64,000 bases of DNA from Octopus bimaculoides (GCF_001194135.2 NC_069009.1:953450-1017449), one strand, 5' to 3'. Shown: positions 24,644 through 59,282, numbered from the stretch's first letter. A program made the numbers and translations. Notes: generated from the letters alone by a model not told the origin.

Positions 24644-25844
<1,201 letters not shown>

Positions 25845-25936
25845 AATCCTCCTCTCTCTTGTCACAGTATGCAAATGTTTTCTTTCGTTTTGTATATTTC
25901 TCTTAACAAATTATTTTGCAATAATTCCGTATATAT

Positions 25937-28199: not shown

Positions 28200-28619
<420 letters not shown>

Positions 28620-28789: not shown

Positions 28790-29233
<444 letters not shown>

Positions 29234-34487: not shown

Positions 34488-35385
34488 ATGATGGCCGTTT
34501 GGTACCTGCTCTGCTCTTTGTCTGCAATATTTTGTAAGTTTTATTTTTTTTTTATTCTATTTTTTTCCATAACTTATTTTTGTTAAGGCAAACCTACTCA
34601 GGTGCACAGAGGTCTGGAATGGGTCACTCACATAAGTTGGATTTTCTTTGTTTTGACAAGGATTTTTCCAATTTTGTTTTCACCACAGCTTTAGAAATGA
34701 TGCATTTTATTGGAAGAAATTTTTGGAAAATTTATGATTTTCCACCACAATCCAACTTATAAACTATCTACCTCATTAACAACTTATATACAGAACCTCA
34801 GGTCCCAAAACATTCCCTAGTTGATTAACAGTGAGCCATCACACCCACCCCATACAACACTAATCTTGGCATTGTTTATAAGAATCACCCACTATCTTTC
34901 AAAACCACAACCCCTCATTATTTAATAAATTCTCAGATGCAATCCTCTCATGTAAACACAGATCCTATTCATTGTTTGCTGATTATGTTAAATCTATGTA
35001 ATTCCTTGATTACGATTAACCTTAAGTTACAACTTAGTTGCACTAGTGACATATCACTTCCACTAATACCACCTCCCCCATTCTAAATATTTCCTTAAGA
35101 TTACCTTTACACATTCCTGCTACCCAGCACATACCCCTTTACAAAGGACCCCGTCCTCATACTTTGAATTCTTACCTGATCATCTTAGTACTTCCTACTC
35201 CTACTTTTACTACCAACTCCCTCTATTTACTCATACATGTCTACATACCTCAGTACTTTCATGTGCCACCGACCCATCTTCCTTTTTCAGATTTCCCCTT
35301 TGCTACACTACTAGCATCTGTAAACTTTTGTTTTCATCTTTTACAGGTTTGACAAGTGCAAACACTTATAAAATCACCCAAAGTG
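34488..35385 (+). CDS. Incomplete Ig-like family copy: leader exons join(34488..34533,35347..35385) = MMAVWYLLCSLSAIFCLTSANTYKITQSG
   Basis: Canonical AG/GT sites, phase 1, homologous to the leader exons of the two complete copies. The Ig exon is not visible (N gaps follow). Confidence 0.6.
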
Positions 35386-38123
35386 GTAAGTAAATTCACA
35401 AACCTTTTTTTTCTCCTTTTAAACTAGACACTATCTTTTCAGTTCTGTCTTCTATTTCTTTCTCTTAACTCATAGCTTTTAGTCAGTTTTGCTTTTTGGT
35501 TTCTTAAAATGTTTTTATTTTGACCATTGAGAAAGGCTAAAGAGCCAGAAACTCACATCAGGGAATGCACTGGAGCAGGGGTTTTCAACCAGGGTCATGA
35601 TGGCTTGTGGAGATTCATATAGGATGGCCACCTTCATTCTTGCCATGGATCCAACAAGCCACAGCATTGTGGTGAGCGCCATTCCATGCATTGGCAAGAC
35701 TTCTATTCCTTGATGACCTTTCTAACACCCACCACTTTACAACATGTAGTGGCTGCTTTTCTTTATTGCACCACCACTGAATTGGTTACCATGTAGCTGC
35801 GATTATGATAGTCATTCTAAATAGGATTGTGGTTATGATGTTTGTCATCATCATTCAATGTCCATGTTTCATGCAGAATTCGTTGCCCCTTTTTAATGCC
35901 AAACATTTTACAGAGTACTGGAGGCTTTTTTTACATGGCACCAACATTAGTAAGTCGCCAAGTAACTGTGAAGGCAAAGAAAGTGGAAGGAAAAAGCCCT
36001 GACTGAAGAGCATACCAGGTGTCGAGAGGTTAAAATAAGTGGGGTGGGTGTAATTGGATAGAGACATGGTTTAATCAGACATACACCCACGTCTGATGAA
36101 ACCATGTCTCAGTAAACATAAATCTCATTAAGTTCAATCTCGTTAGGTTAAGTGTAATAAGATGTTTAATTTATTTTGATAATCTATTTTGCACATTTTA
36201 CCTCTTAATTTCCATGGCAAAAATATTAACCCTTTAGCATTCAAATTACTCAGTCAAATGTAATGCTNNNNNNNNNNNNNNNNNNNNNNNNNNNNNNNNN
36301 NNNNNNNNNNNNNNNNNNNNNNNNNNNNNNNNNNNNNNNNNNNNNNNNNNNNNNNNNNNNNNNNNNNAAAAGTTTTAGATTCAGGCATGATTTTGTTGCC
36401 TCATAACTTCTAGAAAAATGGATACTTTTCAATGAAACTTTCAACAAACAATCTCTTAGATCATACACATTGAGCGTATGTAAAGATTTGTTGGAAAAAA
36501 AAATTTTCCGAGAGGAGTTTCGGAAAATTCACACGACCCGACATTTCATAACTTCTCAGAATTTTCGTAACTTTCAGGAAAATGGGTATTTTTTAAGGAA
36601 ATTTTACACAAATACCTTTCAAACAGCGTAGATGACGATTACAAAGACATCTGGGCATAACTACAGGGTTTTACCCCCTAGACTTTAGGAGGTCATAACT
36701 TTCAGAAAAATGAATATTTTTTAATGAAATTTTCTATGCATATAGTATTTTGGTAAATATGTTACTTACGTGGAAAAAATGCCATGTTCTAGAACCGCAA
36801 TTTCCGCTCTTGTCTACCTGTAATTAAAAAAACAAAAATCAAGAGATTTGGCTGCTATTTCTAGCATGTGTAGAGACCTCCTATGCTTAACTTCATGCGC
36901 AAATAACAGATTGTTCTCGTGGGTGTATACGGGGTGGAAGGGGGGAGGGTCACATGGCGGAGATGTAAACGGAACCCTACCCCGCTTTAGTTTTTTTTTT
37001 TTCTTTTTTAACAGANNNNNNNNNNNNNNNNNNNNNNNNNNNNNNNNNNNNNNNNNNNNNNNNNNNNNNNNNNNNNNNNNNNNNNNNNNNNNNNNNNNNN
37101 NNNNNNNNNNNNNNNNNNNNNNNNNNNNNNNNNNNNNNNNNNNNNNNNNNNNNNNNNNNNNNNNNNNNNNNNNNNNNNNNNNNNNNNNNNNNNNNNNNNN
37201 NNNNNNNNNNNNNNNNNNNNNNNNNNNNNNNNNNNNNNNNNNNNNNNNNNNNNNNNNNNNNNNNNNNNNNNNNNNNNNNNNNNNNNNNNNNNNNNNNNNN
37301 NNNNNNNNNNNNNNNNNNNNNNNNNNNNNNNNNNNNNNNNNNNNNNNNNNNNNNNNNNNNNNNNNNNNNNNNNNNNNNNNNNNNNNNNNNNNNNNNNNNN
37401 NNNNNNNNNNNNNNNNNNNNNNNNNNNNNNNNNNNNNNNNNNNNNNNNNNNNNNNNNNNNNNNNNNNNNNNNNNNNNNNNNNNNNNNNNNNNNNNNNNNN
37501 NNNNNNNNNNNNNNNNNNNNNNNNNNNNNNNNNNNNNNNNNNNNNNNNNNNNNNNNNNNNNNNNNNNNNNNNNNNNNNNNNNNNNNNNNNNNNNNNNNNN
37601 NNNNNNNNNNNNNNNNNNNNNNNNNNNNNNNNNNNNNNNNNNNNNNNNNNNNNNNNNNNNNNNNNNNNNNNNNNNNNNNNNNNNNNNNNNNNNNNNNNNN
37701 NNNNNNNNNNNNNNNNNNNNNNNNNNNNNNNNNNNNNNNNNNNNNNNNNNNNNNNNNNNNNNNNNNNNNNNNNNNNNNNNNNNNNNNNNNNNNNNNNNNN
37801 NNNNNNNNNNNNNNNNNNNNNNNNNNNNNNNNNNNNNNNNNNNNNNNNNNNNNNNNNNNNNNNNNNNNNNNNNNNNNNNNNNNNNNNNNNNNNNNNNNNN
37901 NNNNNNNNNNNNNNNNNNNNNNNNNNNNNNNNNNNNNNNNNNNNNNNNNNNNNNNNNNNNNNNNNNNNNNNTTATTATTATTGTGTTGTATTTTTTACAG
38001 AAACCCACCGTTTTCGTATCAGGCTTTCACCTTTTTACATACTATTGTTTGTTTGTTGTAAAATTAGTGTAACTCAAATAATTTCTGTTGTTTTTCAGTT
38101 TCAGAAAATAATTTTTACAGATC

Positions 38124-40649
38124 ATGGAAATTCTAAAGTTCTTCTGTTTGTCTGCAATATTTTGTAAGTCTTTGTCGTTCTTTTTCTTTATAATTCACTC
38201 TTATTTCTTTATTGCCCACAAGGGGCTAAACATAGAGGGGACAAACAAGGACAGACAAAGGGATTAAGTTGATTAAATCGACCCCGGTGCGTAACTGGTA
38301 CTTATTTAATCGACCCCCGAAAGGATGAAAGGCAAAGTCGACCTTGGCAGAATTTGAACTCAGCCAATGAAATAGTCATGTAGTAACGCCTTACAGTCAT
38401 TTTCCTGAAAGTCACGAGGAAACAAATCCAACTCTTGTGAATTTTCCAAAACTATTCCTCACCCTCAGAATGAATTTTTCCTCTAAAAATTGAGATGTAA
38501 TCAATCTGTACCATCTAGGGCATATTTGTAGAAAATTTCTTTAAGAAAATATCCATTTTTCAGGCACTTGTGAGTAAGCAAAATCAAGTAGGGCACACTT
38601 GTGTAGGTATGCCACTTCACTTAGAAACAAGGAATGTATAGTGACAGGAAGGGTTTCTGGCTGTAGAAGAGAAAAGACAGTCTTTGTGACATGCAAGATG
38701 AAATGGTAAATGTTAAAACAATGGCAGACATCAGCATTGTGATACAATCGCCATTCTATTGTGATCATAACCGTATTGACTCGTAGCATAGTCTTGTCAG
38801 TTTATATATATTTTTTATTGTTAATACAAAAGATGTTCATGAAATACAAGATTCAATCTTCTTGTGTATTACAGGTGTAGAACATCTTCATCAGAAATTC
38901 AATATTTAGGCTTATGTTTCACATCAATGCAGATTCATGTTGCTGTGTTTCATTCTTCATCCATCTCACCAGGTGTGAGAGGGTGGATGTGGCCAGTTTG
39001 AACATAAAACAATAATATTTGGGCCACATATGGCTTGGTTAACCCTTTGGCAATAAAATTACTGTCTAATGTACTGTTCATTTATTCACATTGTTTTGAA
39101 TTCTATCATCTGAAAATCAAAAACTTTGTTTTCATCTTTTACAGGTTTGACAAGTGCAAAAGTTTATATCACCAAAAGTGGTAAATAGATTCACAAACCA
39201 TTTTTTCTCCTTTTAAACTAGACACTATCTTTTCAGTTCTGTCTTCTAATTCTTTCTCTTAACTCAGCTTTTTTAGTCACTGTTTTACTTTTTGGTTTCT
39301 TAAAATGTTTTTATTTTGACCATTGAGAAAGGCTAAAGAGCCAGAAATACACATTGGGGAAGCACTAGAGCAGGGGGTTTCAACCGGGGTCATACACCCA
39401 TGTCTGATAAAATCATGTCCCAGTAAACATAAATCTCATTAAATTAAAACTTGTTAGGCTAAATGTAATAAGATGTTTAACTTATTTTGATAATCTATTT
39501 TGCACATTTTACCTCTTAATTTCCATGACAAAAATATTAACCCTTTAGCATTCAAATTACTCAGTCAAATGTAATGCTTATTTATTCACAATGTTTTGAA
39601 TGAATCACACATTATCTCAGCTTTGAGATTTCAATGATGTGATGCTTTATTTCCAGAATGACATTGTAGGTTAGATGGGAGAGGTCAGATATGGCTAGTT
39701 TGAACATCAGACAAGTAGAGTATTTGGGTCTGATATCGTTAGTTTAAATGCTAAAGGGTTACATTTGGATGTGAGATGAAGGCATGGCTGTGATTAGGAA
39801 CTTTTATTTCCAAGCGTATAATTTAAGGTCCAGTCCCCCTGTATGGCACCTTGTTTAAGTGTCCTCCACTATAGCCCCAGGCCAACAAAAGCCTTGTGAG
39901 TGGATTAGGTAGATAGGAGCTAAAAGGAGCCCATTGTGTGATGTGTGTATATATGGGATATTATAGCCTTGTTTGGAAACAGATGGAGGTTAGTGACAGG
40001 AAGAGTATCCTACTGTTGAGAATGAAAACTCTTATCCACGAAACATGGAACAGTGGGCATCATAATGATGCTGATTTTCTGTCTTGATGAATTTTTAGTT
40101 GAATGAATTGACCCCAGTACTTATTCTACTGGTCTCTTTTGCTGAACCACTAAGTTACTGGGACATAGACACACCAACACTAGTTGGCAAGTGGTGGCGG
40201 AGAACAAACACACATATAAATAAACAACAGGCTTCTTTCAGTTTCCATCAACCAAATCCACACACAAGGTTTTGGCTCATCTGAGGCTGTAGTAGAAGAC
40301 ACTTTCCCAAGGTACTGTGTAGTGGGACTGAACCCAGAACCATGTGATTGGGAAGCAAATTTCTTATCTGATTTCTTTATTTCAGGAAATGTTGTGCTCA
40401 ATGGAAATGTCACTCTTATGATAACAATACCAAATATGAGACGACCAGTGGTTTGGAGGTGTCACAATTATAAATATGAATGTGACAGGACGTGTGCTAA
40501 CGGCACTAACTATAAAGTTACGCAGAGTGGAAATCATTCCACTCTGTGGATTCGAAATGTGACAAAGGAATGTTTGACTTGGAGATTCGACGATGACAAC
40601 CTTCAAGGTGGAACAATTCATTTGAAGATAAACAGTAAGGAAATGATTC

Positions 40650-40681
<32 letters not shown>

Positions 40682-41969
40682 TCCTTTATTGGCCATTGAG
40701 GGTTGAGACAGTGGAAAATATTTAGGATGGTACAGTGTAGGTTTTAGCATGTAAAAAGTCATAAAATAAATGAAAGGAAGTCAAAAAAAGTAAATTCCCC
40801 AATAGAGGTGTGTACCTCTCCAATTTACAGGTACACACTGAGAGAAGGCCCATTCACTCAAGCAATGCTCACCTATCAACAAACTGCTTGGAAGGCGGCA
40901 CTTCCCTCTCCACCCATACCTATAATGGTGATACTTAAAAAAGTTAAATTAAATTTTTTTAAGAATTGAACATACAAATTTCCCAATAAGTAAGTGGTCA
41001 TATTATTTATATCCTACATCAAACTACAGTACCTTTGATTTGGCTGCCATCATTGAAAGATTGAAAATACTTCTCAAATTTTATGCACTATCTTCTATAA
41101 GTATTTAATTTTGTTCACATTCTTTTTCATGATGCGTTTGGTGTAGACACCGATCAAGTCTACAGTCAAACACTTACAAAGCTCAATTCAGTTCAATTTA
41201 AAAGCATAGATAAGCTATGCATTGTAAGCCACACCATGATTTGCAAAATAATTTATCTTACGTTATGCTTCACCCCTGATATGCCTTTTTCTTTTACTCA
41301 TATTAAAATTGCTGCCTCTAGGGCAGCGGACTTGCGGTCATAGGATCGCGGTTTCGATTCTTCTGAAGAGGAACATATAATCTTTTAGATATAGTAATCT
41401 AGGATACTGATGTGTGTTGACCCTTTTGTTATTAGATTTTTGTTGAAATACACTGCCTTTGTTTCAATTAATCTTTAAATAAAGAATTTAGTAAAATAAC
41501 TTCATCACTTCTAAGTTGCTGTTTGGAACATAAATTACTATGAAATTTTGATGGAAGCTTTAAATTTAGATCATTTTAAACCTATTGTTACTTTATTTCT
41601 GTGGAAATACACTGGCTTTGTTTCAATTAATTTTGAAAATATAAAATAATTTAGTAAAATAATTTTGTCATCATTAAACTGGTTTTTCGAACATAAATTA
41701 ACAGGAAATTTTGATGGAAGGTTTCAATTTGGATCATTTAAAAAAAAAAGAGGGCTTTGCACCATCGAAACAAGGGCAGTCTTGAGCAAGTTGGAATGCA
41801 AAGGGTATATAAATGATATGTTTTATTGTTGATCTTTGTATGTGATACAACACCAATATCTGTGGCATATGATGATATCACACTGAAATCTTTTGCAGAT
41901 GGTGGAACCAGCAGCCTCAGAACCAGCTTCATCTTTGTCATTGGGATTATAATTGCTGTCATCATTTAA
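38124..41969 (+). CDS. Predicted GPI-anchored single Ig-like-domain glycoprotein, 131 aa; join(38124..38163,39145..39180,40386..40634,41899..41969)
   Basis: All introns GT-AG and phase 1; 396 nt in frame. Signal peptide MEILKFFCLSAIFCLTSA, Ig-like exon with 4 N-glycan sequons, C-terminal NNGGTSSLRTSFIFVIGIIIAVII*. All exons are conserved in the 52155-56260 paralog. Confidence 0.82.
39541..39758. mobile_element. piggyBac-type MITE (TTAA|CCCTTTAGCATT...AATGCTAAAGGG|TTAC)
   Basis: TIRs with CCCT termini and a TTAA site. Partial copy at 36230-36267; decayed copies in the ZNF 5' regions. Confidence 0.8.
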
Positions 41970-44126
41970 ACAGTTTAAGAAATACCAGTAATAATCTCAG
42001 GTGCTAGAAGGACACTTTTTGATATTTAATCTTTTATCTTTAATCAGTTTCAGTCATTTTGCTGAGGCCATGCTAGAGCATTGTCTTGAAGGGTTTTTAG
42101 TTGAACAAACTGAAACCTGGGCCTTTTTTTTTCTAAGCCTAGAACTTATTCCATTGGTCTCTTAGGCTAAACCACTTAGTGATGGGGACACAAACACACC
42201 ATCACCAATTGTTAAGCGGTGATGGGGGATAAATACAGACGCGCAACCAACGTCTTTCAGTTTCCATCTCTCAAATTCACTCAAAAGGTTTTGGTTGGCC
42301 CAAGGCTATAGTAGAAGACACTTGCCCAATGTGGGACTGAACCCGGAACCATGTGGTTGGGAAGCAAGCTTGATTTGTTCGCCTAAAGGCAGTGTTCCAG
42401 TATTGCCGCAGTCAAATGACTGAAACAAGTAACATATTTTTAATTTCATTTATGTCTCCCCTCTCTTTCAATAAAGTCTCTTTCTTTATCCGTAGTCTCT
42501 CATTTCTCTCTCTCTCTCTTTCTACACAAAAATGAAATGTATTAGTTACCCCATTGGCACCAAAACTTCCAAAGGGAAACTGTATTTTTTTTTTCCTCTA
42601 ATTCACTTGATACCATCTATTCTGCAATTTGGGATTAAAATATCCAGTGATGTAAAATATATATAGCAGCATCATGCAGGCATAGCGTGGATTTGAACCT
42701 CAATCGCCAAATTTCACTTAACAGTTCAACAGAAATTTTCTCATGGTAAAACAATAGTTTTTCTGTGAGTGACAGCAGTTACATTTGCCAGATGCTTTTT
42801 GCTAAGCAGAATATCATTGCCACTTGGCCCTTCTAACCTCTTCTATATAACTTAAAGTGAAAGTGACAAGACAATAGACTTCTCAAACTACTCACTGTTT
42901 GGATAACAGTATGCCTCTCTTTCTCGCTATATTGTGATAGTTATAAATACTAAAACACCGTAGGAAGAAAGGGAGTTGGCAAAAACGAGATGATGCAGAA
43001 GGCGACCACAGGCAGAATCCAGTTAGTGACAACCGTGTTTGGCTTAACAAATTGTAACAACCATGGAAGTAACCAACACGGAAGTTGTCTTGTCCCATAT
43101 TCTCCTCACCGCTGTTTCATTGACAAGAACAATAAAGGTATCTTTCTATCAACTTCCTACACTTACATTCATTCTATCTTCCACTGACCCCTTTTTTAGC
43201 ATCTAGTAGGAGGCTAACATAAAAACAGCAACAACATACAAAAAAAAAAAAAACTCTCTCTGTAGTTTATATATTATACACCTGCCCGTTGCGGTATGGC
43301 ATATCTTAAAGTAATGAGAAATAAATCTGGAGTCAACATTAACTTTGTCCACTGTTCTTCTTATTTCACATCTTACAACATGCCGTTACAATTACATTAA
43401 CCAGCCTGACTGACCTTCATACGGGTGACATGTAAAAGCACCCACTACACTCTCTGAGTGGTTAGTGTTAGGAAGGGCATCCAGCTGTAGAAACTCTGCC
43501 AAATCAGATTGGAGCCTGGTGTAGCCACCTTGTCCACCAGTCCTCAGTCAAATCGTCCAACCCATGCTAGCATCGAAAGCGGACATTAAACGACGATGAT
43601 GATGATGATGATGATTACAATTGGTGACCTTCGACTACAATGAATAATTATGTCATTACAGATATTTTGTTTTAGTATTATACTTGTTGCACACACAAAT
43701 ATTTCTTTAGAAGAATTTATTATTCTTCATGTCTTCTGCCCTGACTTTGTTACCACTAAGCTTTAGTATTGTCACTGACGGCTTCAGTGTGGTTGTTGAG
43801 TGTATTCGGGCTTGTGTTAGGAGACTTTTCAAAGATTTGGGCTGTCTCTTACTTTTTATAATTGTGTGCGTTTGGAGGGTTAAATTCATATATATATATA
43901 TGACCACTTTACTGAGTGTACTGGGTACATTTTATGTAGGCATGAAAGCAACAATGAAAGATCACTGGAATGCTTTGTCTCTCATATAAATGCTCGTGTG
44001 AGTAGTTAAGCTGTTTGTAATGAGCAAATTATCTGTCACATGTCACAATGATATGGCTTCTCTCTTGTATGAAAACATTTGAGACTAGTTAAAGTGCTAA
44101 TCTTGGAAAATGATTTACCACAGGTA

Positions 44127-45317
44127 TTACAGTGATATGACTTCTGTATGAAATTGTTTGTGCCTAGTCAACAGATTATTTTGAGAAAATGATTTACCAC
44201 AGATATCACAATGATATGGCTCCTCACCTGTATGTGTACGTTTGTGAACATTTAAGTTACCAACTCCAGAGAAGGATTTACCACAGATATCACAGTGATA
44301 TGGCTTCTCTCCTGTATGAATACGCTTGTGAGTAGTTACGTTACTAGTTTCAGAGAAGGATTTACCACAGATATCACAATGATATGGCTTCTCTCCTGTA
44401 TGAATGCGTTTGTGACGAATCAAGGTATTATTTTGAGAAAACGATTTACTACAGATATCACATTGATATGGCTTTTCTCCGGTATGACTGCGTTTGTGAA
44501 TAGTTACGTGACCATTTTCAGAGAATGATTTACCACAGATATCACAGTGATATGGCTTCTCTACTGTATGAACACGCTTGTGAGTAGTCACGGTACTAGC
44601 TTCAGAGAAGGATTTACCACAGATATCACAATGATACAGCTTCTCTTTGGTATGAACATACTTGTACTTAGTTAAGTTACCAGTTTCAGGGAAGGATTTA
44701 CCACAGAAAACACACTGATATGGCTTCTCTCCTGTATGAACACGCTTGTGCTTAGTTAAGTTACCAGTTTCAGAGAAAGATTTACCACAGATATTACAGT
44801 AATATGGCTTCTCTCCTGTATGAACACGCTTGTGCTTAGTTAAATTACCAGTTTCAGAGAAGGATTTACCACAGATATCACAATGATATGGATTCTCTCC
44901 TGTATGAATACGTTTGTGACTAGTTAAGATACTATGTCTAGAGAATGATTTACCACAGATATCACAATGATATGGCTTCTCTCCTGTGTGGATGCGTTTG
45001 TGATCAGTCAAGTGATAATTTCGAGAGAAGGATTTACCACAGATATCACAGTGATATGGCTTCACGCCTGAATGAATGTATTTGTGAACAGTTAAGTTGT
45101 GTCCATAAGAGAACGACTTACCACAGATATCACAATGATATGGCTTCTCTCCTGTGTGAACACGTTGGTGAATGACTAAGTCAGCTTTCCGAGAGAATAA
45201 TTTACCACAGGTATCACAATCATATGATATTTTGCCCTTTTCATTCTTTTCCTCATCAGGAAAATCCATTTCTTCAGACTCTTTTTTTATATTCATCTTC
45301 ACTCCAATATAATTCAT
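44127..45317 (-). CDS. Tandem C2H2 zinc-finger protein, 13 fingers (1 degenerate); ancestral ATG (45324) out of frame
   Basis: TGEKPY-linked fingers; the leader matches the 24732 gene except for a +1 in an A7 run. Confidence 0.85.
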
Positions 45318-45395
45318 TTTCCATATTGTTCCTTTCTCTCGTCACAGTACACAAATGTTTTCCTTCCTTTTGTATATTGCTCTTAACAAATATTT

Positions 45396-45425
45396 CTACT
45401 GATCTATACGTGTTATGTATAACAT
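45396..45425 (-). promoter_or_regulatory. Shortened candidate uORF MLYITRIDQ*
   Basis: Same ATG; a deletion junction supplies a new stop. Confidence 0.4.
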
Positions 45426-48400
45426 CTTTGCTCAGTCTTTAAGATGTTCAATACTAATGATGTAGTTTATATAAAAATTCTGTGATGCAGATATCATCTG
45501 ACAATCTGAAACAAAAGAGAAACAACAGTGTCAAACGTACGAGATAATTACAAATTAGAGAGGTTAAAACCAAGGAAGTTTTACAACATTTTCATATAGA
45601 CATGACCATAAAGGTGCAGGCACGGTTGTGTGGTAAGAATTTTGCTTACCAACCACATGGTTCTGGGTTCAGTCCCAGAGTGGCCAATCAAAGCCTTGGG
45701 TGGAGGATTTGTTAGGTGGAAACTGAAAGAAGCCTGACATATACCAAATACCAAAATGTATTCTAGTCAAAATAAGCAAAACAGAAATTAAAATATGAGG
45801 TACCTTTCATTAAATCCAAATTCAATCGTTTAAACAGGAGTGCTCTCCCTTTGTTTACTTTCAATTTACAAAGAAGGCGCGTCATAAAAAGGCTTTTTTT
45901 CTAATTCCTTTTCTTCTAACAGTTTCTTTGAGGAGAAGAAAGACAAATATTGAATTTCTCAAACTAATTATTCAAACTACCCTAGAAAGAATTTAGGTAA
46001 ATGACTTAAGGTCATGATGAGGAATAACAGAAAATACCGTATCTATTTCATGAGCGTGACAATAATCCAACTCTACAAGACATGCAGAATTGTCAGTGCC
46101 AAAGCCTCCTGCAGCAGCTAAAAGGTTACTGAAAAATATCAGAAATCCTAGGGGTTTTATAAGCCACTTTAGATATTTCTAGAAGCGTCCAGAAATTAAA
46201 TTTCAGAACAATTTTGATGGAAAACTTGGATGGCTTCGGCTAATAACTTATTAAGGTTAACAATTATTAAACCAATGAAAAGAAACTTTTCGAATTGTCT
46301 TCGTCTAAATTTGTATTTTAGCACCAAAAGAAAATTTTCACAGAACAACTCCAGTTGATTTGAAAACATATCTGCTACAAAACTATTGTAGTACAAAATC
46401 TTGAATATCCTAAGATTTCTGATTATAAAAGGTTTGTACAAAGAGAAAACGAACTTCAAAAGAAGAATAAGCTGGAATTATTACTTTACTCACAATTTAA
46501 TCTCAATCGTTATCTTCGAAAGAGTCCTTTACCCTACAGTTTTGATTCAAAAGTAGAGATTCATCAAGGAAGTCTGCTAATTGCTGACAAGAAATGAAAG
46601 AACATCTGACATCAGAAATAACAGTGATCCTATGGTAATGGAGAATTTATAAAACATGCATTGGTTTGCTTTTCAAATACCGAAACGAAATTATAGTATT
46701 GTCCCAAAATTAATGGCAATTATATATTTATTTAAAGCAAAAATGAATTTCATTTCCATAATTAGTATATAAACTTATCTCAATCCGCTAAATTTGAAAT
46801 CGATAGTGTAGCGACGCAAGTCATAAATAAACTTTATTGGCAGCAAACATGACCATTACATCATAGAGTACTAAGAACCGTATTTCGTGAAAAATTTCTC
46901 TTTGAAGAAAGTTTAGAATTCTAATATGGGCAGAAATTTTAACCGACGGGGGAAAGACTTCCGCTCCCACCTTCTCTCCCAAATTTATTTATTTTGTAAT
47001 TTTTTTTGACAAAAATCCCCGTTTTCGGATACGGAGATTCCGGAAAATTGCCAAAACTGGGCATTTGTGAAATTTCCCCCTAATTTCTTCAATTTTGACT
47101 TTTTTCCCCAACACGAAGCCTAACCTTGAAACCGTAACCATAAGTATAGAAATGTTTTGAAATTTTTGTCCGAATCATGGTGTCCATATTTTTCCGCATA
47201 TTTAGANNNNNNNNNNNNNNNNNNNNNNNNNNNNNNNNNNNNNNNNNNNNNNNNNNNNNNNNNNNNNNNNNNNNNNNNNNNNNNNNNNNNNTTTTTTTTT
47301 TTTTTGTTTTTTTTCCAACATATTTTGTAAAGAAAAAAATTCTGAAAAAAGTTTTGTTTATGTGTAAATTCAAGAGATTTGGCTGCTATTTCTAGCATGT
47401 GTAAAGACACTGGTTAGAAATCACCTGCGCATGTGCAAATAATGATAATGTAAATAATCGTGTTAATACAATACGCGCCTTCCTTCCTCCGAAATTTTGC
47501 AGGAGGGACCCATCCCGAAAGGATGAAAGGCAAAGTCGACCTCGGTGGAATTTGAACTCAGGACTTAACGGCAGACGAAACACCGCTAAGCATTTCGCCC
47601 GGCGTGCTAACGATTCTACCTAAAATACTAGAGTACTTGAGCCCTCAATAATGTCGGGGTTTGTGTTGGAAAATTTGCACGATCGGAGTAATGAGGACAA
47701 TTGAAAACGCGGAAGTAACAGGTAAGGAAGAAAATTACATTTATCACATTTCTAAAGAGACATCAAAAGGGGGTTATTTTGGTAATTTTTCTGATTAACA
47801 CCCGCACGATTTTCACTAGGGTGTTAGGGTTAGGTAATCGTGCAGGTGTTAATCTGAAAAATACCGTTATATAAACGAAATTTTCTAATACAGGCGCAGG
47901 GGTAGCTATGGGGTAACAACTTTATTTCTCAACCACATGGTTCCGGGTTCAGTTCCACTGCATGAAATTTTGGTAAATTTTACCGAAATTTTCTATAAAT
48001 ATGCTTCGGATTGTGTAGATTCCAATGATATCGGATTTTACTGTGAATTGTTTTTTTCCTGAGGGTGAAGAGAGGAGTTTCGAAAAATTCACGAGACGAA
48101 TTTGTTTCCTCGTAACTTTCAGAAAAAAGGGTTATGTTTACAATATTGGCTGAGGTAACGACAATGGATCGCAACCCCCTTTGGGACATTTTTTTGGCAG
48201 ATTCGGAATCTCCGCACTCGATATAGTGGGTTCTCTTTTACTCTTTTACTTGTTTCATTCATTTGACTGCGGTCATGCTGGAGCACCGCCTTTAGTCGAG
48301 CAAATTGACCCCAGGACTTATTCTTTGGAAGCCTAGTACTTATTCTATCGGCTCTCTTTTGCCGAACCACTAAGTTACGGGGACGTAAACACACCACCAT

Positions 48401-49031
48401 CGGTTGTCCAGCGATGTTGGGGTGGGGTGGGGGGAACAAACACAGACATACAAACATATACACACACATATATACAATAATAGGATAAACTCTTATATGA
48501 GAATTTATCAAGTAGTTTTCGTGAAAAAAATTCATAGGGAAGAATCTATCGTCTTTCCCTAAATTATATTTATCTATTTATATATATATATATAAGGGCA
48601 TAACTATACAAGAATGCCTCACGTTAACTACCGTAAAAATACATTTTTACCGATGTTTATACACACACACATATATATATATACGACGGGCTTCTTTCAG
48701 TTTCCGTCTACCAAATTCACTCACAAGGCTTTGATCGGCCATCTCTTTACCCCTTCATATTTTTCTTTCCCTTTCACCTTCACCTCCCCATTCCTACTAT
48801 CAATTGACCTTGTCTGACCTCTAACCAGTACACTTTCCCTCTCTTCATCTTTCTATTATATCTCCCTGCTTTTCTTCCTCTCTTCGCTTTGCCCTTACAA
48901 ATGCATTCCCTACCTTTAGGTCACTTAAAAAAAACCCCTCCATTTAACAACACTGTACAAACTTTATACTTGGAATGACTAATTTGAAATACTTTTGGAA
49001 CTTACAAGCTATTGGAATCTTATATGGGTCC

Positions 49032-49176
49032 AGATGGACTATATGTAATCTGAACCTTTCCCCCCTTGTTTTATTTTTTTTTACGGAATCCCACGTTTTA
49101 GGCTGTGGAGATTCCGATTCTGAAAAAAAATTAATAAATAAGGGGAGAAAAGGTTCAGATTACATATAGTCCATCT
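49032..49176. mobile_element. MITE with ~28-bp TIR (AGATGGACTATATGTAATCTGAACCTTT)
   Basis: Both inverted arms visible; partial copy at 1276-1370. Confidence 0.75.
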
Positions 49177-50124
49177 CTGCCCTTATATGTATACCATTCT
49201 GCCTTAAAAAAATGGATCTACGGATGCAATATCCCCGCTTATCTCATGTCTATTTTCATTCCTCCACTTCACTCTCCATTTCTTATCTAGAATAACTATT
49301 GCTTAACCATTTTCTCACGCCGTCTCCGATGAAAGGATATATGAAACATCCTGGAAACAGCTGTAATATATATATANNNNNNNNNNNNNNNNNNNNNNNN
49401 NNNNNNNNNNNNNNNNNNNNNNNNNNNNNNNNNNNNNNNNNNNNNNNNNNNNNNNNNNNNNNNNNNNNNNNNNNNNNNNNNNNNNNNNNNNNNNNNNNNN
49501 NNNNNNNNNNNNNNNNNNNNNNNNNNNNNNNNNNNNNNNNNNNNNNNNNNNNNNNNNNNNNNNNNNNNNNNNNNNNNNNNNNNNNNNNNNNNNNNNNNNN
49601 NNNNNNNNNNNNNNNNNNNNNNNNNNNNNNNNNNNNNNNNNNNNNNNNNNNNNNNNNNNNNNNNNNNNNNNNNNNNNNNNNNNNNNNNNNNNNNNNNNNN
49701 NNNNNNNNNNNNNNNNNNNNNNNNNNNNNNNNNNNNNNNNNNNNNNNNNNNNNNNNNNNNNNNNNNNNNNNNNNNNNNNNNNNNNNNNNNNNNNNNNNNN
49801 NNNNNNNNNNNNNNNNNNNNNNNNNNNNNNNNNNNNNNNNNNNNNNNNNNNNNNNNNNNNNNNNNNNNNNNNNNNNNNNNNNNNNNNNNNNNNNNNNNNN
49901 NNNNNNNNNNNNNNNNNNNNNNNNNNNNNNNNNNNNNNNNNNNNNNNNNNNAGTCGTAAGTTACCTCATCATTTCGCATTTGTTGATTCCCTGAAGATGA
50001 ATATACGTGGAATTTCAGCAGCTCTTATTTCTTTGGAGGAGGACTCACATATATTTTGAAACATGTGTAGGAATTAAAGGAACTTTTATTTATATGCGTT
50101 TTGCTCCATTTATTGTTATTATTC

Positions 50125-50158
<34 letters not shown>

Positions 50159-50699
50159 TCTATACTGTAAAACTTAATTTAATTTTAATTTTTAATAATT
50201 TGAATTTGAGTTTTTACCTGTAAATTTAGATTTTTATCCCTAACCAGATGGCTGCATCTTCTAGGCACTAGTTTCAGGCTCAGAATTTCTGGAGCCACCA
50301 CCGACACTGGTTTACATTATTGTTCGATCCCCATATACTGCATTAATACTTCCTCACACTTTCCATTGTGTTGTTGTCTTTATTGAAATAATAATTTACT
50401 GAATACGCTCGTTTGTCACCTCCATTATAGCTTTGAAAAGATAGCTCTTAAAATCGAACTGCGCTCTTTAAAACTTGTACAAAGAATGAATACAAAGTAA
50501 AATTACTACCTCCTTTTATAGCAAGTTGATGCAGGTAGTTTATCCTGTCCCCCTCCAACTTTTACTTCATGCAGTTGAAAAAAAACACATTATTTATGGG
50601 TTGACTCAATATATATACACAAATTTGCATGCATATATATAAATATACACACACATTTGCATGTATATATATATAATGTGCATGCATATTATATATACA

Positions 50700-51235
50700 T
50701 CTCCGCTTGCAAAGACCTGTTGAGGCAAGTGAAATCGAACTCAACGACTGGCACCCATGCCAACGTCGTCTCCTTCATTGGACACGAAACTCGGCTTGCG
50801 AAGACCTGTTGGGGCAAGCGAAATCGTGATGGCACCTGTGCATCGCCTTCCTGGCACTTGTGCCGGTGGCGCATGTAAGGACATTCGAGCGAGACCGTTG
50901 CCAGTGCTGCTGGACTGGTTCTTGTGTGGGTGCTGCGTGAGATGCACCATTTTGAGCGTGGCCGTTGCCAGTGCCGCCTGACTGGCCTTCATTCCGGTGG
51001 CAAGTAAAAGCACCCACTACACTCTCGGAGTGGTTGGCGTTAGGAAGGGCATCCAGCTGTAGAAACTCTGCCAAATNNNNNNNNNNTCTCGGAGTGGTTG
51101 GCGTTAGGAAGGGCATCCAGCTGTAGAAACTCTGCCAAATCAGATTGGAGTCTGGTGTAGCCATCTGGTTCACCAGTCCTCAGTCAATTCGTCCAACCCA
51201 TGCTAGCACGGAAAGCGGACGTTAAACGATGATAA
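50700..51235 (+). mobile_element. Long copy of the (GAT)n-tailed interspersed repeat
   Basis: Homologous to 8231-8522; internal 10-N gap with a duplicated flank. Confidence 0.7.
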
Positions 51236-51505
51236 TGATACATACACATTTGCATGCATGCATATATATATATATATATATATATNNNNNNNNNNNNNNN
51301 NNNNNNNNNNNNNNNNNNNNNNNNNNNNNNNNNNNNNNNNNNNNNNNNNNNNNNNNNNNNNNNNNNNNNNNNNNNNNNNNNNNNNGTGTGCATATATATA
51401 TTTGTGTGTGTGTATATATACATATATATTTGTGTGTGTGTGTGTGTATCTAACGATTTTTGTATGTTATTTTAAGTGGCTTATAAACACCTTCCACGTT
51501 GCAAT

Positions 51506-51553
<48 letters not shown>

Positions 51554-52154
51554 CACAAACTCGTGATTTATTTTCCATGCACCGGATTAATAATGACAAA
51601 GTTATTTTAGTAATCTTTATTGAATTGTAGGCAGTATATTTTAACAGAAAAACGGAAATTTTATAACAAAAGAGTTAAAGTGATCAAAATTATAACCTTC
51701 CATCTCAAAGTTTTTTTAAATTTATATTCCAAATCTGAGCTTAATTATGGGAAAAGCTTTTTAACTAAATTCTTCGTTGTTTTTGAAAGTGGCAGAAATG
51801 CAGTGAATTATAATAGAAATCATCACCATCATTATCCACAGAAATTCTGACAAATATTTGTCCCTGCTTTTCTAAGTTAGACATATGTAAGTCAGAGCAG
51901 AGTTTTGGAAAATTGGATGTCAATTCGACGATGATGCTGACAGTATAAATAAAGTGGCAGTAATTTAAAGAGTAAAAGTTTATATCAAGGCTGGTGTACA
52001 TCAAAATAAGATTTAATAAATCTCTTATTTATTAAATTATAGGTGCAGGCAAGGGTGTGGTAAAATGCTTGCTTCCCACCCACATAGGACCAGATTAAAT
52101 ATCAAAAAGTGTCCTTCCAGCATCTGAGATTATTTCTGTTATTTCTTAAACTGT

Positions 52155-55100
52155 TTAAATGATGACAGCATTTATAATCCCGATGACAAAGATGAAGTGG
52201 GTTCTGAGGCCGCTGGTTCCTTGTGCACCATCTGCAAAAAAATTTCAGTGTGATATCACTATATGTCACAGATATTGGTGTCGTATCACATATAAAGATC
52301 AACAATAAAACATATCATCTATATACCCTTTTCATTCCAACTTGCTCAAGACTGTGGCCATGCTGGAGCACCGCCTTTATAGTCTAGCAAATCGACCCCA
52401 GGACTTATTCATTGTAAGCCTAGTACTTATTCTATCGGCTCACTTTTGCCGAACCGCTAAGTTACAGGGGCGTAAACACACCAGCATCGGTTGTCAAGCA
52501 ATGCTGGGGGGGGGGGCGCAAGCAGACACACAAGCACACACATACATATATATACGTATACATATACGACGGGCTTCTTCCAGTTTCCGTCTACCAAATC
52601 CAATCACAAGGCTTTGGTCGGCCCGAGGCTATAGTAGAAGACACTTGTCCAAGGTGCCACGCAGTGGGACTGAACCCGGAACCATGTGGTTGGTAAGCAA
52701 GCTACTTACCACACAGCCACTCCTGCACCTATAAGCTACTTACCACACAGCCACCCCTGGAATTATTAATATTATAAATTATTTCCTTACTGCTTATCTT
52801 CAAATCGGTTGTTCCAAAGTTGATATTGTAGTCCGCAAACATCCAGGTCAAACAATCCTCTGTTACTTTTGTTATCGAAAGAGTAGAAGTATTCCCACTC
52901 TGCATAACTTTATAGTTAGTCCCGTTAGCACATGTCCTGTCACATTCATATTTATAATTGTTGCACCTCCAAACCACTGGTCTTCGCATATTTGGTACTG
53001 TAATATTGAGGGTGGCTTCTCCATTGAGCTTAATATTTTCTGAAATAAAGAAATCAGATAAGAAATTTGCTTCCCAAAAACATGGTTCTGGGTTCAGTCC
53101 CACTGTGCAACACCTTTGCCAAGTGTTTTCTACTACAGCCTCGACTATCATAATTGCAGCTACATGGTAATCAAATGAGTGGTGGTGCAGTAAAAAAAAT
53201 GCACCCACTACACTTTGTAAAGGGGTCAGTTTTAGGAAGGTCATCAAGAAATAGGAACCTTGACAATGCATGGAATGGAGCTTGCCACAATGTTGGCTTG
53301 TTGGATCCATGGCAAGATTGAAGGTGGCCATTTTATAAGTACCCTCACACAGGCCATCTCGACCCTGGTTGAAACCCACTGCTCCAGTGCTTCCCTGGTG
53401 TGTATTTCTGGCTCTTTAACCTTTCTCAATGGTCAAGTTAAAAATTTAAAGAAACCAAAAAGCAAAATAGTGACTAAAAAAGCTATGAGTTAAGAGAAAG
53501 AAATAGAAAACAGAACTGAAAAGATAGTGTCTAGTTTAAAAAGGAGAAAAATGTTTGTGAATCTATTTACCACTTTGGATAATTTCATAAATCCCTGCAC
53601 TTGCCAAACCTGTAAAAGATGAAAACATTAAGTTTTGATTTTCAGATGATATAATTCAAAACAATGTGAATAAACAAACAGTACATTAGACAGTAATTTG
53701 ATTGCCAAAGGGTTAAGCCAGCCATATCTGGCCCAAATATTACATAGGCGCAGGAGTGGCTGTGTGGTAAGTAGATTGCTTACCAACCATATGGCTGCGG
53801 GTTCAGTCCCACTGCGTGGCACCTTGGGCCGACCAAAGCCTTGTGAGTGGATTTGGTAGACGGGAACTGAAAGAAGCCCGTCGTATATATTCAATAAACT
53901 GGGATATTATGGCAGGAAGAACATCTGATTGTATATAAAGAAAACTCTGATCACAAGTATGGAAAATTAGGTGTTCAAACAATGATGATGGTGAAAAGAT
54001 AACCCTGAAATCTTTCATATGACAAAACTGTCGCTAACATTGGTTTATCTGTTTATTTCAGGTCCAGTTGTGTTAAGAGGAAATGTCACTTTTCATACTG
54101 AAGAAATAGCCAATATGAAAAGGTCTATTATCTGGGAAAATGGTCGTTGCAGTCTCAGATATGCCAATACATGCTGCAACAATGGTAACTATGAAGTTAG
54201 CCACACTGGTAACATTTCTACTCTTTGGATCCAAAGTGTCTCTCAGGAAGATATGACTTGAGTTTTTCGAAGTGACAATCTCTGCTATGCGAAAATTACT
54301 GTGGTGACAAAAAGCAAGGAAATTACTTCTGCTAATAATAACAACAATAATTTCATCAATCCCCAAGAAGATGAAAGACAATACCACAGAACAATCAATC
54401 ATCTCTTGTATATGGATGATCTTAAAACTGTATGCTGCAAATGATAAACAAATGGAAACTTTATTACAGACAGTACATGGATTTACCAAAGAAATAAATA
54501 TGAAATCTAGCTTGGAAAAATGTACCAACGCAACCTTGAAAAGAGGAAAACTAGTTAAGAGTAGCAACATCACACTAGATAAAGCAAATGAAGTAAGAGA
54601 ATTAGACCAAAGCCTTCCCACCAGAAATACATGAAGTTAAAAAAAAAATACAAAGCCCAGTCCTGGCTAAGAAGGAACATATTCAGAGACATGACTGAGT
54701 TGGGACCTATATACACTGGAAGCTATGCCAACACTATGGAATAACAACAGAAAAAGATGTTATAAGCTCACCCCAGAAAAGGTCACAGAAAATGAGAAAG
54801 TAACCATATTCTGGGATATGTCAATATGCACAGATAGAGAATTCAAGGCCAATAGACCAGATATAGTTGTCAGAGATCACCAAGATCATCAGAAATCACC
54901 ATTGTAGACATATGTTGAGAGGAATTCTTCGGGGTTTGGAGAACTTACCTTTGGAAACATGGGTGTTTCATTCAACATCCTTAAACAACTCTTATTCAGG
55001 GACCTTTTGAGCAGGATGGGCTACTCAACCTGAAGAAAATTCTAACTGGGCCCCACTTGCAAGGTCATGCACTGTTCATCTTGATATGAGATCACCATGT

Positions 55101-56260
55101 CGTGCACATATGGTTGTGATGCAAGTGCTTGGTGTACCCTTATCAGACGGGTAGTCATGATGGGTATAATGGGCTTTGTATATTTTACCCCAGTGTCACT
55201 TTGATGGCATGCACTGCTCTCTCACTCAATAATAATAATAATAATAATGATAATCATCACTGAACAAATATTTTTATAATACTTAAGCAAAATTAAAAAT
55301 TTGTAACTTTCAGGGTTTTCTTCTGTGTTTTTTTCTTTTTTCTTTTTTTCTTTCTTTTACCTGTTTTGAATTAATAGATCTTCATAATAATCCCTGCTGA
55401 GATATATTCGTAGTTGACTGAATGGATTGGTTAGTTTCAGTCTCTAGGATCACCTGTCTATATTACAATTTATTTGTTGAACATCTGACATGTGGCGCAC
55501 TTGTGCCCTTGTGCAGACAATGTTGATTTGATGGAAGGAGGGAGTTAATGTACAACTCACACATTTGATCCCTATAAGTAAATAATTTGTGCAGGGCTTC
55601 CAGTCAAAACTGCACACTGATATGTCATCTTTGACAGCAGATTCTGTTATATCTTCTACTATATAAATGCAAGTGTATGTGGTTATGTAGCTGTGTTTAG
55701 CCCCCAAAAGGCTGATTTTGGCCATTCGTTTTTGCATTACACACTCAAAAACCATAGGGGAAACCTTTTCAGTAAAAGTTTATTTATCACTTCACGATTT
55801 GACAGAGGACACCACATAAGTTGGATTATCTCTGTTTTGATGGGTACTTTTCAACTTCAGCATTGGAGGCAGACATTAAATGATGATGATGATGATTGTG
55901 TAGATTAGGATTATATCAGAAGTTAATATGGAAACAATTTGGTTGGCATGTACATATTAGTACTGACAAATTTCAAGTTTCATCTTGTAGATATATGTGC
56001 TGTGTGTGAGCCTGCCATTTTTTTCCTTAAATAAATATTCAAAAACCTTTATTTCATTTTCATGTGTGTGGTGAAAAAACAATTTGAAAAATCCCTCTCA
56101 AAACAGAGAAAATCCAATTTATGTGGGTGACCAATTCCAGACTTCTGTTTACTTGTATAGTTATGCCTCAACAAGAATGAATTTTTAAGAAAAAAAAAAA
56201 AAAAAAAACAAACTTACAACATAATGCAGACAAACAACAGAAGAACTTTAGAATGTCCAT
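52155..56260 (-). CDS. Predicted GPI-anchored single Ig-like-domain glycoprotein, 135 aa; complement(join(52155..52231,52791..53039,53571..53609,56218..56260))
   Basis: GT-AG phase-1 introns; 408 nt in frame. MDILKFFCCLSALCCLASA|GIYEIIQSENIKLNGEATL...LKISNGAQGTSGLRTHFIFVIGIINAVII*. Coding indels versus the paralog are multiples of 3. Confidence 0.82.
52350..52730 (-). mobile_element. Composite tRNA-derived SINE (AGGTGCAGGAGTGGCTGTGTGGTAAG...GGTTCAGTCCC head) in intron 3 of the minus-strand Ig-like gene
   Basis: More than 10 related copies in the window (e.g. 12855-13015, 53745-53890, 57300-57692, 59820-59990). Confidence 0.8.
54062..54313 (+). pseudogene. Diverged Ig-like exon with in-frame TGA (54259-54261) at a conserved Trp and a GC donor, nested antisense in intron 1 of the 52155-56260 gene
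   Basis: GPVVLRGNVTF..ANMKRSIIW...YEVSHTGNISTLWIQSVSQEDMT*VF aligns with both intact exons; acceptor TTTATTTCAG is conserved. Confidence 0.75.
54345..55248 (+). mobile_element. Internally deleted RLE-type non-LTR retrotransposon relic (R4/Dong-like), flanked by (AAT)n
   Basis: NHLLYMDDLK (RT), LAKKEHIQRHD, and ENEKVTIFWDMSICTDREFKANRPDIVV (restriction-like endonuclease). Whether 54900-55248 belongs to the same element is inferred. Confidence 0.7.
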
Positions 56261-58239: not shown

Positions 58240-58800
58240 GATTAATTGGCATCAAAATTCTGCTGGCATTTCAAAAGTGTTACATGAAAGTTACCAGCAT
58301 ATTGCTGAAAAATTTCCTCGTTTCAAACGAATATTCCCTCAGACACTTTTTGTTGCTTTTAGACAGTATAAAAATATAAGAGAACTATTAACCACTTCCT
58401 CTAACTCCAAAAACACTACCATTGGAGTTCCTTGAGCACTACTCCGTTAAAAACAGCCGCAGGAGAGGTGAGCCCTGTTCATCGTGCAACAACATGAGTC
58501 AAGGCAATTCCACCAGGAATCAACAGAAATGTTATGATTTCTACAGAAGATGAGACATGTAGAGATTCTCATTTGGTGTACGTGGCAGAATGCACGAAAC
58601 ACGACTTGATTTATGTTGGTTGTACAACAGAACAATTAAACAAAAGATTCAATGGACGCAGATATGACGTCAGGCACAGTGGCAGTGGTTCGATAGAACT
58701 TTCTGAACATTTTATTATGTCCAGTGGCTACAGTTTTGAGGAATACCTGAAAGTGCACATTCTCAGAAAAATTCTGAATCTACTACACTTTCAGTTCTCA
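58240..58800 (+). mobile_element. Decayed Penelope-like element C-terminus (GIY-YIG endonuclease)
   Basis: FVAFRQYKNIRELL linker, EPCSSC motif, CRDSHLVYVAECTKHDLIYVGCTTEQLNKRFNGRRYD. Confidence 0.75.
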
Positions 58801-59282
58801 AAATGCACGAGGACAAATTTCTCTTGAAATGCACTGCCTTTGCTTCAATTAATTTTGGAAATAATGAGGAATTTAGTAAAATAACTACATTGTCATTTAG
58901 CTGTTGTTTGCAATATAAATTAACCTGAAATTTTAATGAATGGCATGGCTGTGTGGTAGGAAATTTGCTTCCCAACCACATGGTTCTGGGTTCAGTCCCA
59001 CTGTATGGCAACTTGGGTATGTATCTTAAAAGAAGCCCATCATATATATGCATGTGTGTGTGTGTGTGTGTTTGTCCTCCACCACTAATTGACAACTAGT
59101 GCTGGTCTGTTTATGTCCTCATTCACAAATGAGCTTTTTGACAAAAGAGACGGGGCCCTGAAAAAGTAAGTGCTGGGGTGCCCCAGCATGGCCACTGACT
59201 AATGACTGAAACAAGTAAGGGATAAATGATGTGCTGGTGATGCCAACATTGCCTTTGATCTGCATGAGAGAACGGAACAGTT

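Follow-up and report, generated by a model that had tools for sequence, protein, structure and literature searches.

A 64-kb window of Octopus bimaculoides DNA (the window being the whole stretch analyzed here, with coordinates counted from its first letter) contains two small genes, LOC106883299 and LOC106883582, that are functional paralogues and are called gene 1 and gene 2 below. We consider it probable that they encode small glycosylated surface proteins that have an immunoglobulin (Ig)-like domain, are attached to the membrane by glycosylphosphatidylinositol (GPI), and are built from repeatable exon cassettes. The gene models were rebuilt from the sequence, and their translations are letter-for-letter identical to database proteins. 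The product of gene 1 (131 amino acids; P0049) is identical to XP_014789745.1 and A0A0L8FHS3, isoform X3 of LOC106883299, and that of gene 2 (135 amino acids; P0003) is identical to XP_014790131.1 and A0A0L8FG41 of LOC106883582. Both loci are already annotated as “uncharacterized protein” in UniProt and RefSeq, and their accessions (A0A0L8... and XP_0147...) suggest that the models go back to the original genome annotation. The family had been called hidden in the original prediction, which was made from the sequence alone. This description does not hold, as the genes are present in both databases and were missed only by a prokaryote-style list of open reading frames (ORFs).

Gene 1 lies on the plus strand and gene 2 on the minus strand, such that the two are convergent, and each has four coding exons encoding a leader, a short segment (mini-exon 2), the Ig-like domain, and a tail (Table 1). 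All six introns are of the GT...AG type with polypyrimidine tracts, and the lengths of the exons across copies (40/43/46, 36/39/39, 249/249, and 71/77 nucleotides) differ by multiples of three. The two complete, convergent genes and their exon architecture were therefore recovered at the positions predicted for them by rebuilding the models, and the GT-AG introns and in-frame indels that had been claimed hold for every intron and every exon copy. The outermost start codons, at 34488 and 56260, form the ends of the region studied. An acceptor AG occurs just 5' of each first-exon ATG, directly before it in leader exon 1A and 3 nucleotides before it in leader exon 1B and in gene 2. Because of these acceptors, along with the 5' untranslated region (UTR) of an octopus mRNA contig that is joined at this point and the upstream exon of isoform X1, each gene comprises five or more exons, of which four are coding. 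The description of four-exon genes is thus right for the coding portion and too low for the total.

The window is AT-rich (37% G+C) and has 15 runs of N. When all of these were checked, none was found inside gene 1 (38124–41969) or gene 2 (52155–56260), and therefore no reading frame depends on a gap. Two gaps (36268–36367 and 37016–37971) are located between leader pair A, described below, and gene 1, while four others are intergenic and lie between gene 1 and gene 2. The exact product of one of the genes maps to the newer chromosome-level assembly (GCA_001194135.2, CM046629.1, near 1.0 Mb), whereas look-ups of the exact products P0001, P0004, and P0049 gave no record. The spacing of gene 2 and the neighboring zinc-finger gene is unchanged in this assembly, and the gaps there are therefore unfilled.

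The ratio of nonsynonymous to synonymous substitution (dN/dS, or omega), calculated on the Ig exon, is 0.30 for gene 1 versus gene 2, and 0.32–0.33 in comparison with a relative from O. sinensis. Between gene 1 and gene 2, omega is 0.93 over the first 16 codons, 0.07 over the central 31, and 0.26 over the last 35. These values show purifying selection on the exons. In O. sinensis, LOC115225458 is divided into the same four coding exons, with longer introns between them, and its Ig exon is also phase 1/1. Together with the identity to database proteins, these observations place the gene pattern far beyond chance. RNA evidence is provided by L004, an intronless contig of 1067 nucleotides from run SRR3401912, which has been described as an octopus metatranscriptome (PMC11662614). 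L004 encodes a paralogue (P0017) in which leader, Ig, and tail segments follow each other in the same order as in the window genes, with the stop codon in the tail segment, a 5'UTR of 244 nucleotides, and a 3'UTR of at least 400 nucleotides. The 3'UTR of L004 matches the window at 52101–52221 and 51721–51967, which suggests the extent of the 3'UTR of gene 2. L004 is evidence for the architecture of these genes and not for the gene 1 and gene 2 loci themselves.

Table 1. Exons of the Ig-like genes and other features of the window (nt, nucleotides; aa, amino acids; a slash within a peptide marks predicted signal peptide cleavage).
Feature	Position	Strand	Description
Gene 1 leader exon 1B	38124-38163	+	40 nt coding, MEILKFFCLSAIF + 1 nt; donor GTAAGT
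Gene 1 mini-exon 2B	39145-39180	+	36 nt, phase 1/1; CLTSA/KVYITKS
Gene 1 Ig-like domain exon	40386-40634	+	249 nt, phase 1/1
Gene 1 tail exon	41899-41969	+	71 nt, TAA end
Gene 2 leader exon	56260-56218	-	43 nt coding, MDILKFFCCLSALC + 1 nt
Gene 2 mini-exon 2	53609-53571	-	39 nt, phase 1/1; CLASA/GIYEIIQS
Gene 2 Ig-like domain exon	53039-52791	-	249 nt, phase 1/1
Gene 2 tail exon	52231-52155	-	77 nt: N-G-A, spacer QGTSGLRTH, hydrophobic FIFVIGIINAVII, TAA
Gene 2 probable 3'UTR	51721-52154	-	From alignment of the 3'UTR of octopus mRNA contig L004
Upstream coding stretch, LOC106883299 isoform X1	33055-33078	+	MSRNTSSR, then GTAAAT donor; matches the N-terminus of P0050 exactly
Leader exon 1A	34488-34533	+	46 nt, MMAVWYLLCSLSAIF + 1 nt, phase 1
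Mini-exon 2A	35347-35385	+	39 nt, phase 1/1
Orphan Ig-domain pseudo-exon	54062-54310	+	Inside gene 2 intron 1, opposite strand to gene 2
C2H2 zinc-finger ORF	44127-45317	-	396 aa; between the convergent Ig-like genes; not a family member
Other zinc-finger ORF	3189-4817	+	
Other zinc-finger ORFs	8540-9916, 13505-14884, 19863-21020, 24732-25874	-	

The 249-nucleotide, phase-1/1 exon had been predicted to encode an Ig-like domain, and the structural evidence bears this out. In a Pfam scan, the gene 1 product matched the I-set model at 13.4 bits, as compared to a cut-off of 23.7, and the gene 2 product had no match. Sub-threshold I-set matches occur in nine of 34 family members and cover the same D-E-F segment; only a five-repeat abalone protein scored above the I-set threshold (56.8 bits). 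The structure of the domain was modeled with AlphaFold2 using an alignment of 32 sequences, with the domain taken from RefSeq isoform P0001, in which it is identical to that of gene 1. The model has a mean predicted local distance difference test score (pLDDT) of 82.8, with values above 90 over residues 21–110, and is composed of eight strands (A, B, C, C', D, E, F, and G). A model that was based on just six close sequences had a pLDDT of 47 and was discarded. The original prediction had proposed AlphaFold and Foldseek as a check for a β-sandwich, and the fold returned was an Ig-type sandwich. Foldseek gave 48 matches in the PDB with expectation values (E) of 1e-3 or lower. Those listed are overwhelmingly Ig domains, the top matches being so without exception, and include titin I27, M1, M4, and I81, antibody V domains, obscurin, NCAM2, and KIRREL3, with target-normalized template modeling (TM) scores of up to 0.67. 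A 34-sequence profile compared with PDB sequences gave weak matches, nearly all to members of the immunoglobulin superfamily (IgSF) and in register (titin, CD2, obscurin, myotilin, and CD79b), and a six-sequence profile gave no match to PDB sequences. Assignment of the modeled domain as an Ig-like sandwich of the I-set/V type is well supported.

The best structural matches to the octopus domain are I-set domains (PF07679; titin I27, PDB 1WAA). The octopus domain shares with these the weak sequence matches over D-E-F ('Y.V...G..STL.I..V'), a C' strand, and the strand-C tryptophan. It differs from them in having W-x-F in place of Y-x-C on the F strand, in the replacement of the B-strand cysteine by Ile, Thr, or Val, and in its sub-threshold score. 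Some accepted Ig domains also lack the canonical disulfide. We surveyed the cysteines of 40 octopod domains, with statistics that ignore phylogeny. The strand-C tryptophan is present in 39 of the 40 domains, and the canonical B-F disulfide is absent, with Ile, Thr, Val, or Ala at the B-strand position and W-x-F on the F strand. A CxxxC motif follows strand C' in 39–40 of the 40. A further pair of cysteines, one at the end of strand C and the other just before or at the start of strand F, is complete in 21 domains, wholly missing in 15, and represented by a single cysteine in four (Fisher p = 4e-7 for co-occurrence, uncorrected for relatedness). As these two positions should neighbor each other in the G-F-C sheet of the model, we infer a C-F disulfide along with a small CxxxC loop, the pairs expected in gene 1 numbering being Cys51-Cys88 and Cys58-Cys62. 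In a second subfamily, the cysteines are located in the F-G hairpin instead.

The gene 1 Ig exon encodes the invariant W, CxxxC, and W-x-F residues and four N-x-S/T sequons, and it is joined to alternative leaders. A third leader pair, noticed in the original prediction, is present upstream of gene 1 (leader exon 1A and mini-exon 2A; leader pair A) and is annotated as alternative 5' exons of this gene. Leader exon 1A is used by RefSeq isoforms X1 (P0050) and X2 (P0001), and both isoforms splice from 35385 to 40386, the start of the gene 1 Ig exon, as read from P0001. In mini-exon 2A the signal peptide ends, with cleavage predicted between TSA and N, and the first strand (TYKITQS) follows. The short coding stretch that precedes this pair in isoform X1 marks a separate 5' exon and promoter for it.

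The simplest reading of leader pair A is that of a partial tandem duplicate, equipped with an upstream exon of its own and used as an alternative start of gene 1. Another possibility, which we regard as doubtful but worth weighing, is that it constitutes the 5' half of a third, complete gene, with Ig and tail exons that fall in the two gaps between leader pair A and gene 1, with isoforms X1 and X2 being artefacts of a gapped assembly or of read-through transcription. Such a gene would be consistent with the upstream exon and its GT donor, and with intron 2 of leader pair A, which shows collinearity with intron 2 of gene 2 over 500 nucleotides and then with intron 2 of gene 1 over 188 nucleotides, right up to the gap. 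The offset from gene 1 would also put exon 3 at about 37075, within the 956-N gap, gap lengths being estimates. However, the island between the gaps (36368–37015) is without family sequence and is not collinear with the gene 1 intron, and the gap sizes as given provide ~1.9 kb of room, whereas at least 2.4 kb would be needed for exon 3, intron 3, exon 4, and the intergenic DNA before exon 1B. The RefSeq connection of leader pair A to the gene 1 Ig exon also argues against a third gene, as does the retention of the same spacing, and hence the same gaps, in the newer assembly, at least between gene 2 and the zinc-finger gene.

A signal peptide is plausible for these proteins. By inspection, a hydrophobic core (MEILKFFCLSAIFCL) is followed by T-S-A and then K, in agreement with the -3/-1 rule, and the first 13–15 residues were modeled by AlphaFold2 as a helix. 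Cleavage is predicted after T/A-S-A, within mini-exon 2, and together with the C-terminal processing described below would leave a mature domain of ~91 residues. Three to four N-glycosylation sequons occur within about 90 residues, such that this domain would carry 3–4 N-glycans. At the C-terminus, N-G-G (gene 1) or N-G-A (gene 2) is followed by a polar spacer of 7–9 residues, 13 hydrophobic residues, and the stop codon. The gene 1 tail exon finishes the Asn codon of N-G-G, the putative omega site, and encodes the spacer TSSLRTS ahead of the 13 hydrophobic residues. The pattern of N-G-G/A, spacer, and hydrophobic end is kept in the O. sinensis tail, and all annotated isoforms of both genes stop in the same tail exon. 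GPI signals consist of small residues at positions omega to omega+2, a polar spacer, and a hydrophobic end, with no cytoplasmic residues. Inspection of the tails against these rules makes GPI anchoring likely. The protein would be cut at the Asn of N-G-G/A, whose codon is split by intron 3, and transferred to a GPI anchor, with the spacer and the hydrophobic end acting as the attachment signal. GPI anchoring is rated here as likely and not as shown because the hydrophobic part is short and the judgment follows a rule of thumb. Once anchored on the outer leaflet, the protein would be a small, mobile recognition or adhesion molecule capable of signaling only via partners in cis or trans, a role suggested by the action of other GPI-linked IgSF proteins.

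The same Ig-like ectodomain might instead be made without GPI, the hydrophobic end being a short membrane anchor that lacks a cytoplasmic tail, or the protein being released or degraded (e.g., secreted after inefficient processing). We consider this unlikely. The hydrophobic stretch of only 12–13 residues, interrupted by Asn in gene 2, would be compatible with such a fate, but a C-terminal run of 13 hydrophobic residues is too short to span the bilayer stably. Close relatives (P0009, P0012, and P0021) do have genuine transmembrane helices and basic cytoplasmic tails; in both window genes and in O. sinensis, however, N-G-G/A and the polar spacer are kept and resemble a transamidase site. Some annotated relatives (P0015, P0029, and P0037) end by read-through after exon 3 and have no anchor, but such endings lead into (AAT)n repeat sequence of the intron and have the look of annotation artefacts. 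A GPI-anchored form is the preferred reading.

An (AAT)n microsatellite follows the Ig-exon donor in gene 1 (40650–40681), and degenerate versions occur in gene 2 (52759–52782) and after the pseudo-exon (54330–54350). Several family proteins in the databases end in '...KEITSANNNNNNSF', which corresponds to read-through into (AAT)n and is probably an annotation artefact. In O. sinensis isoform P0006, an alternative acceptor located upstream adds 16 residues before the tail (CM016885.1, L003 20352–20447). The stretch 5' of exon 4 is 91–93% conserved between the window genes (41777–41898 and 52232–52354), and that of gene 1 is open in frame; neither window gene has an AG at the point equivalent to the P0006 acceptor.

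The fourth copy had been predicted to be a pseudo-exon, and inactivating changes were seen in it: a TGA at the position of the invariant Trp, loss of the invariant Glu-Cys, and a GC donor instead of GT. No leader or tail exons were found to accompany it. It belongs to the second subfamily, in which the cysteines are in the F-G hairpin, and is a dead exon. Despite this orphan, the existence of relatives with 2–5 tandem domains (P0008–P0013), and a database model that joins zinc fingers to an Ig-like domain (P0027), it is highly improbable that gene 1 and gene 2 are decaying pseudogenes or exons of one larger multi-domain gene, as the frames of both are unbroken, their splice sites follow the consensus, and omega is ~0.3. 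A start codon, a signal peptide, and a stop codon are present in each of the two, the products, with one domain apiece, were annotated independently, and single-domain relatives with an identical layout occur in O. sinensis. The two cannot form one transcription unit, as they are on opposite strands and converge, with a zinc-finger gene between them.

The Ig exons of gene 1 and gene 2 are 79% identical in nucleotide sequence, as compared to 89% for the adjoining intron. Differences between the two genes cluster in two parts of the domain, A'/B and E-F/F-G, and its center is almost invariant. This pattern could result from exchange of exon segments with paralogues, from homogenization of the flanks, or from local diversification. 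The location of these differences would fit a scaffold that is conserved and a binding face that diverges. Mini-exon 2 and the Ig exon form a repeatable cassette, as both are phase 1/1, and relatives with 2–5 domains have mini-exon-2-like sequence as the linker between domains. A tRNA-derived repeat resembling a short interspersed element (SINE; core GGTTCTGGGTTCAGTCCCACTG) is found directly upstream of both Ig exons, at 40283–40370 and 53055–53142, and was therefore inserted before the duplication. Further SINE-like copies are located at 39795–39943, 45634–45746, 47870–47984, 53724–53890, 58913–59027, and 59799–59992, and the repeat gives rise to misleading long ORFs at 40322–40699 and 52729–53379.

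Several points weigh against the reading of gene 1 and gene 2 as paralogous genes for GPI-anchored Ig-like proteins. The RNA evidence, contig L004, comes from a paralogue and not from gene 1 or gene 2. Both window proteins fall below every Pfam Ig threshold, and the Foldseek matches reach modest E-values of about 2e-4. The hydrophobic end is short for a GPI signal, and that of gene 2 has an Asn inside it. The role in adhesion or recognition is an analogy. Lastly, the proportion of synonymous differences (pS) in exon 3 is 0.41, as compared to a divergence of about 0.11 in the flanking intron, and a simple model of duplication has no explanation for this excess.

The window proteins had been called Thy-1-like, and this description applies to their overall architecture. 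The Thy-1 gene also has separate exons for the signal, domain, and tail. Like Thy-1 (CD90), a vertebrate GPI-anchored glycoprotein with a single V domain (PMC6497726), the octopus proteins combine a signal peptide, one Ig-like domain of ~90–110 residues, several N-glycans, the lack of a cytoplasmic part, and a C-terminal hydrophobic signal. The likeness does not extend to sequence homology, as alignment of the family profile with human Thy-1 by hhalign gave a probability of 0.1% (E = 0.58), nor to the canonical intersheet disulfide. This bond, Cys28-Cys104, is among the features of Thy-1 (PMC6497726), whereas the octopus domain lacks it and has CxxxC and the C/F-strand cysteine pair. Thy-1 is thus an analogue, and the octopus family is not a Thy-1 family. 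Other GPI-linked Ig families that have expanded in particular lineages, namely the neuronal adhesion molecules IgLONs, contactins, and Drosophila Dprs and DIPs, are thought to provide surface labels for recognition (PMC5715320, PMC10863630). These proteins have 2–6 canonical Ig domains and known partners, whereas the octopus proteins have a single noncanonical domain. The obvious candidate for a relative described earlier is squid Sgp-1, reportedly a small cephalopod brain glycoprotein with Thy-1-like features (Williams, Tse, and Gagnon 1988, Immunogenetics 27:265).

Relatives were sought in 1.84 billion representative proteins by an exhaustive profile search, which gave 35 matches. Those judged genuine belong to O. 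bimaculoides, O. sinensis, O. vulgaris, and Argonauta hians, along with one abalone protein, and all are named 'uncharacterized'. No squid protein was among the 35 matches, and almost no members were gained from another, word-indexed search that used the domain alignment. Bacterial repeat proteins (P0034, P0036 HYR_4C, and P0039–P0041) were rejected as compositional or repeat-summed matches. Annotated loci number at least nine in O. bimaculoides and at least ten in O. sinensis, with most on one small chromosome, consistent with the duplicating family that had been proposed. The family is not uniformly composed of small, GPI-type proteins, as the original prediction had it. Its members carry 1–5 tandem copies of the domain, some have a second, Cys-rich domain type, and several have a true transmembrane helix and, after it, a cytoplasmic tail that is basic. 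In P0027, C2H2 zinc fingers are fused to an Ig-like domain in one database model; this is probably a chimera of annotation that mirrors the proximity of zinc-finger and Ig-like genes in the window.

Abalone species have their own expansion of related surface proteins, the Haliotis LOC124119024 family, whose members are named 'uncharacterized' or 'mucin-like'. The strand-C W, the CxxxC motif, STL-x-I, and W-x-(F/I)-x-D are in place in the N-terminal domain of this family as in octopus, and comparison of the octopus and abalone profiles gave a probability of 94.8% (E = 5e-8). Like the octopus family, the abalone family has expanded in tandem on one chromosome. The abalone proteins differ in adding a first/last cysteine pair, Cys-rich domains, mucin-like stalks, and transmembrane helices with tails, and the single-domain GPI-type form was absent from the abalone proteins that were read. 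As the domain subtype is shared by abalone and octopods, it is older than the split between cephalopods and gastropods. A literature search by LOC, XP, and UniProt identifiers and on octopus IgSF and GPI proteins in general found no papers on this family.

The Ig-like genes are interleaved with a zinc-finger cluster, as had been predicted, with one C2H2 gene located between the two copies. Altogether, six single-exon C2H2 zinc-finger ORFs of 380–542 amino acids occur in the window (Table 1). Several of these have an upstream 'CTVTRERxIMENELY' segment in common, and they look like part of the octopus zinc-finger expansion. An intact, divergent pair of intronless histone genes, H3 and H4 (28200–28610, minus strand; 28922–29233, plus strand), is located between the zinc-finger and Ig-like genes, with a 58-N gap between H3 and H4. 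An ORF at 58534–58827 (plus strand) has a weak match to a GIY-YIG nuclease (E = 0.002) and may be the remnant of a Penelope-like element. Two ORFs in intron 1 of gene 2 (54371–54907, plus strand) resemble fragments of retroelements and have no Pfam match.

Gene 1 and gene 2 belong to a newly recognized, lineage-expanded, and divergent group of the IgSF in molluscs. The kind of family is unsurprising, and a lineage-specific expansion of the IgSF is in itself a common finding in molluscs. Recognition of the domain as Ig-like gives a name and testable traits to an “uncharacterized” family that has no Pfam model. The traits that define this family are its unusual cysteine pattern, its GPI-type and transmembrane forms, its main cluster on a small chromosome beside zinc-finger genes, and a related expansion in abalone. 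A neural or immune role for these proteins is pure speculation. It is conceivable, although improbable on present evidence, that the CxxxC Ig domain defines a mollusc-specific branch of the IgSF in which tandemly amplifying octopod cassettes (mini-exon and Ig exon, both phase 1/1) and alternative leaders yield GPI-linked, transmembrane, and multi-domain labels, with the fast-changing A'/B and F-G regions as the binding face, and that these labels make up a recognition code for the nervous system or innate immunity. If this were true, a code for cell recognition would exist beside the known protocadherin and zinc-finger expansions of octopus. The large brains and complex tissues of cephalopods arose independently of those of vertebrates, and lineage-specific families of surface proteins such as this one are candidates for the recognition systems involved.

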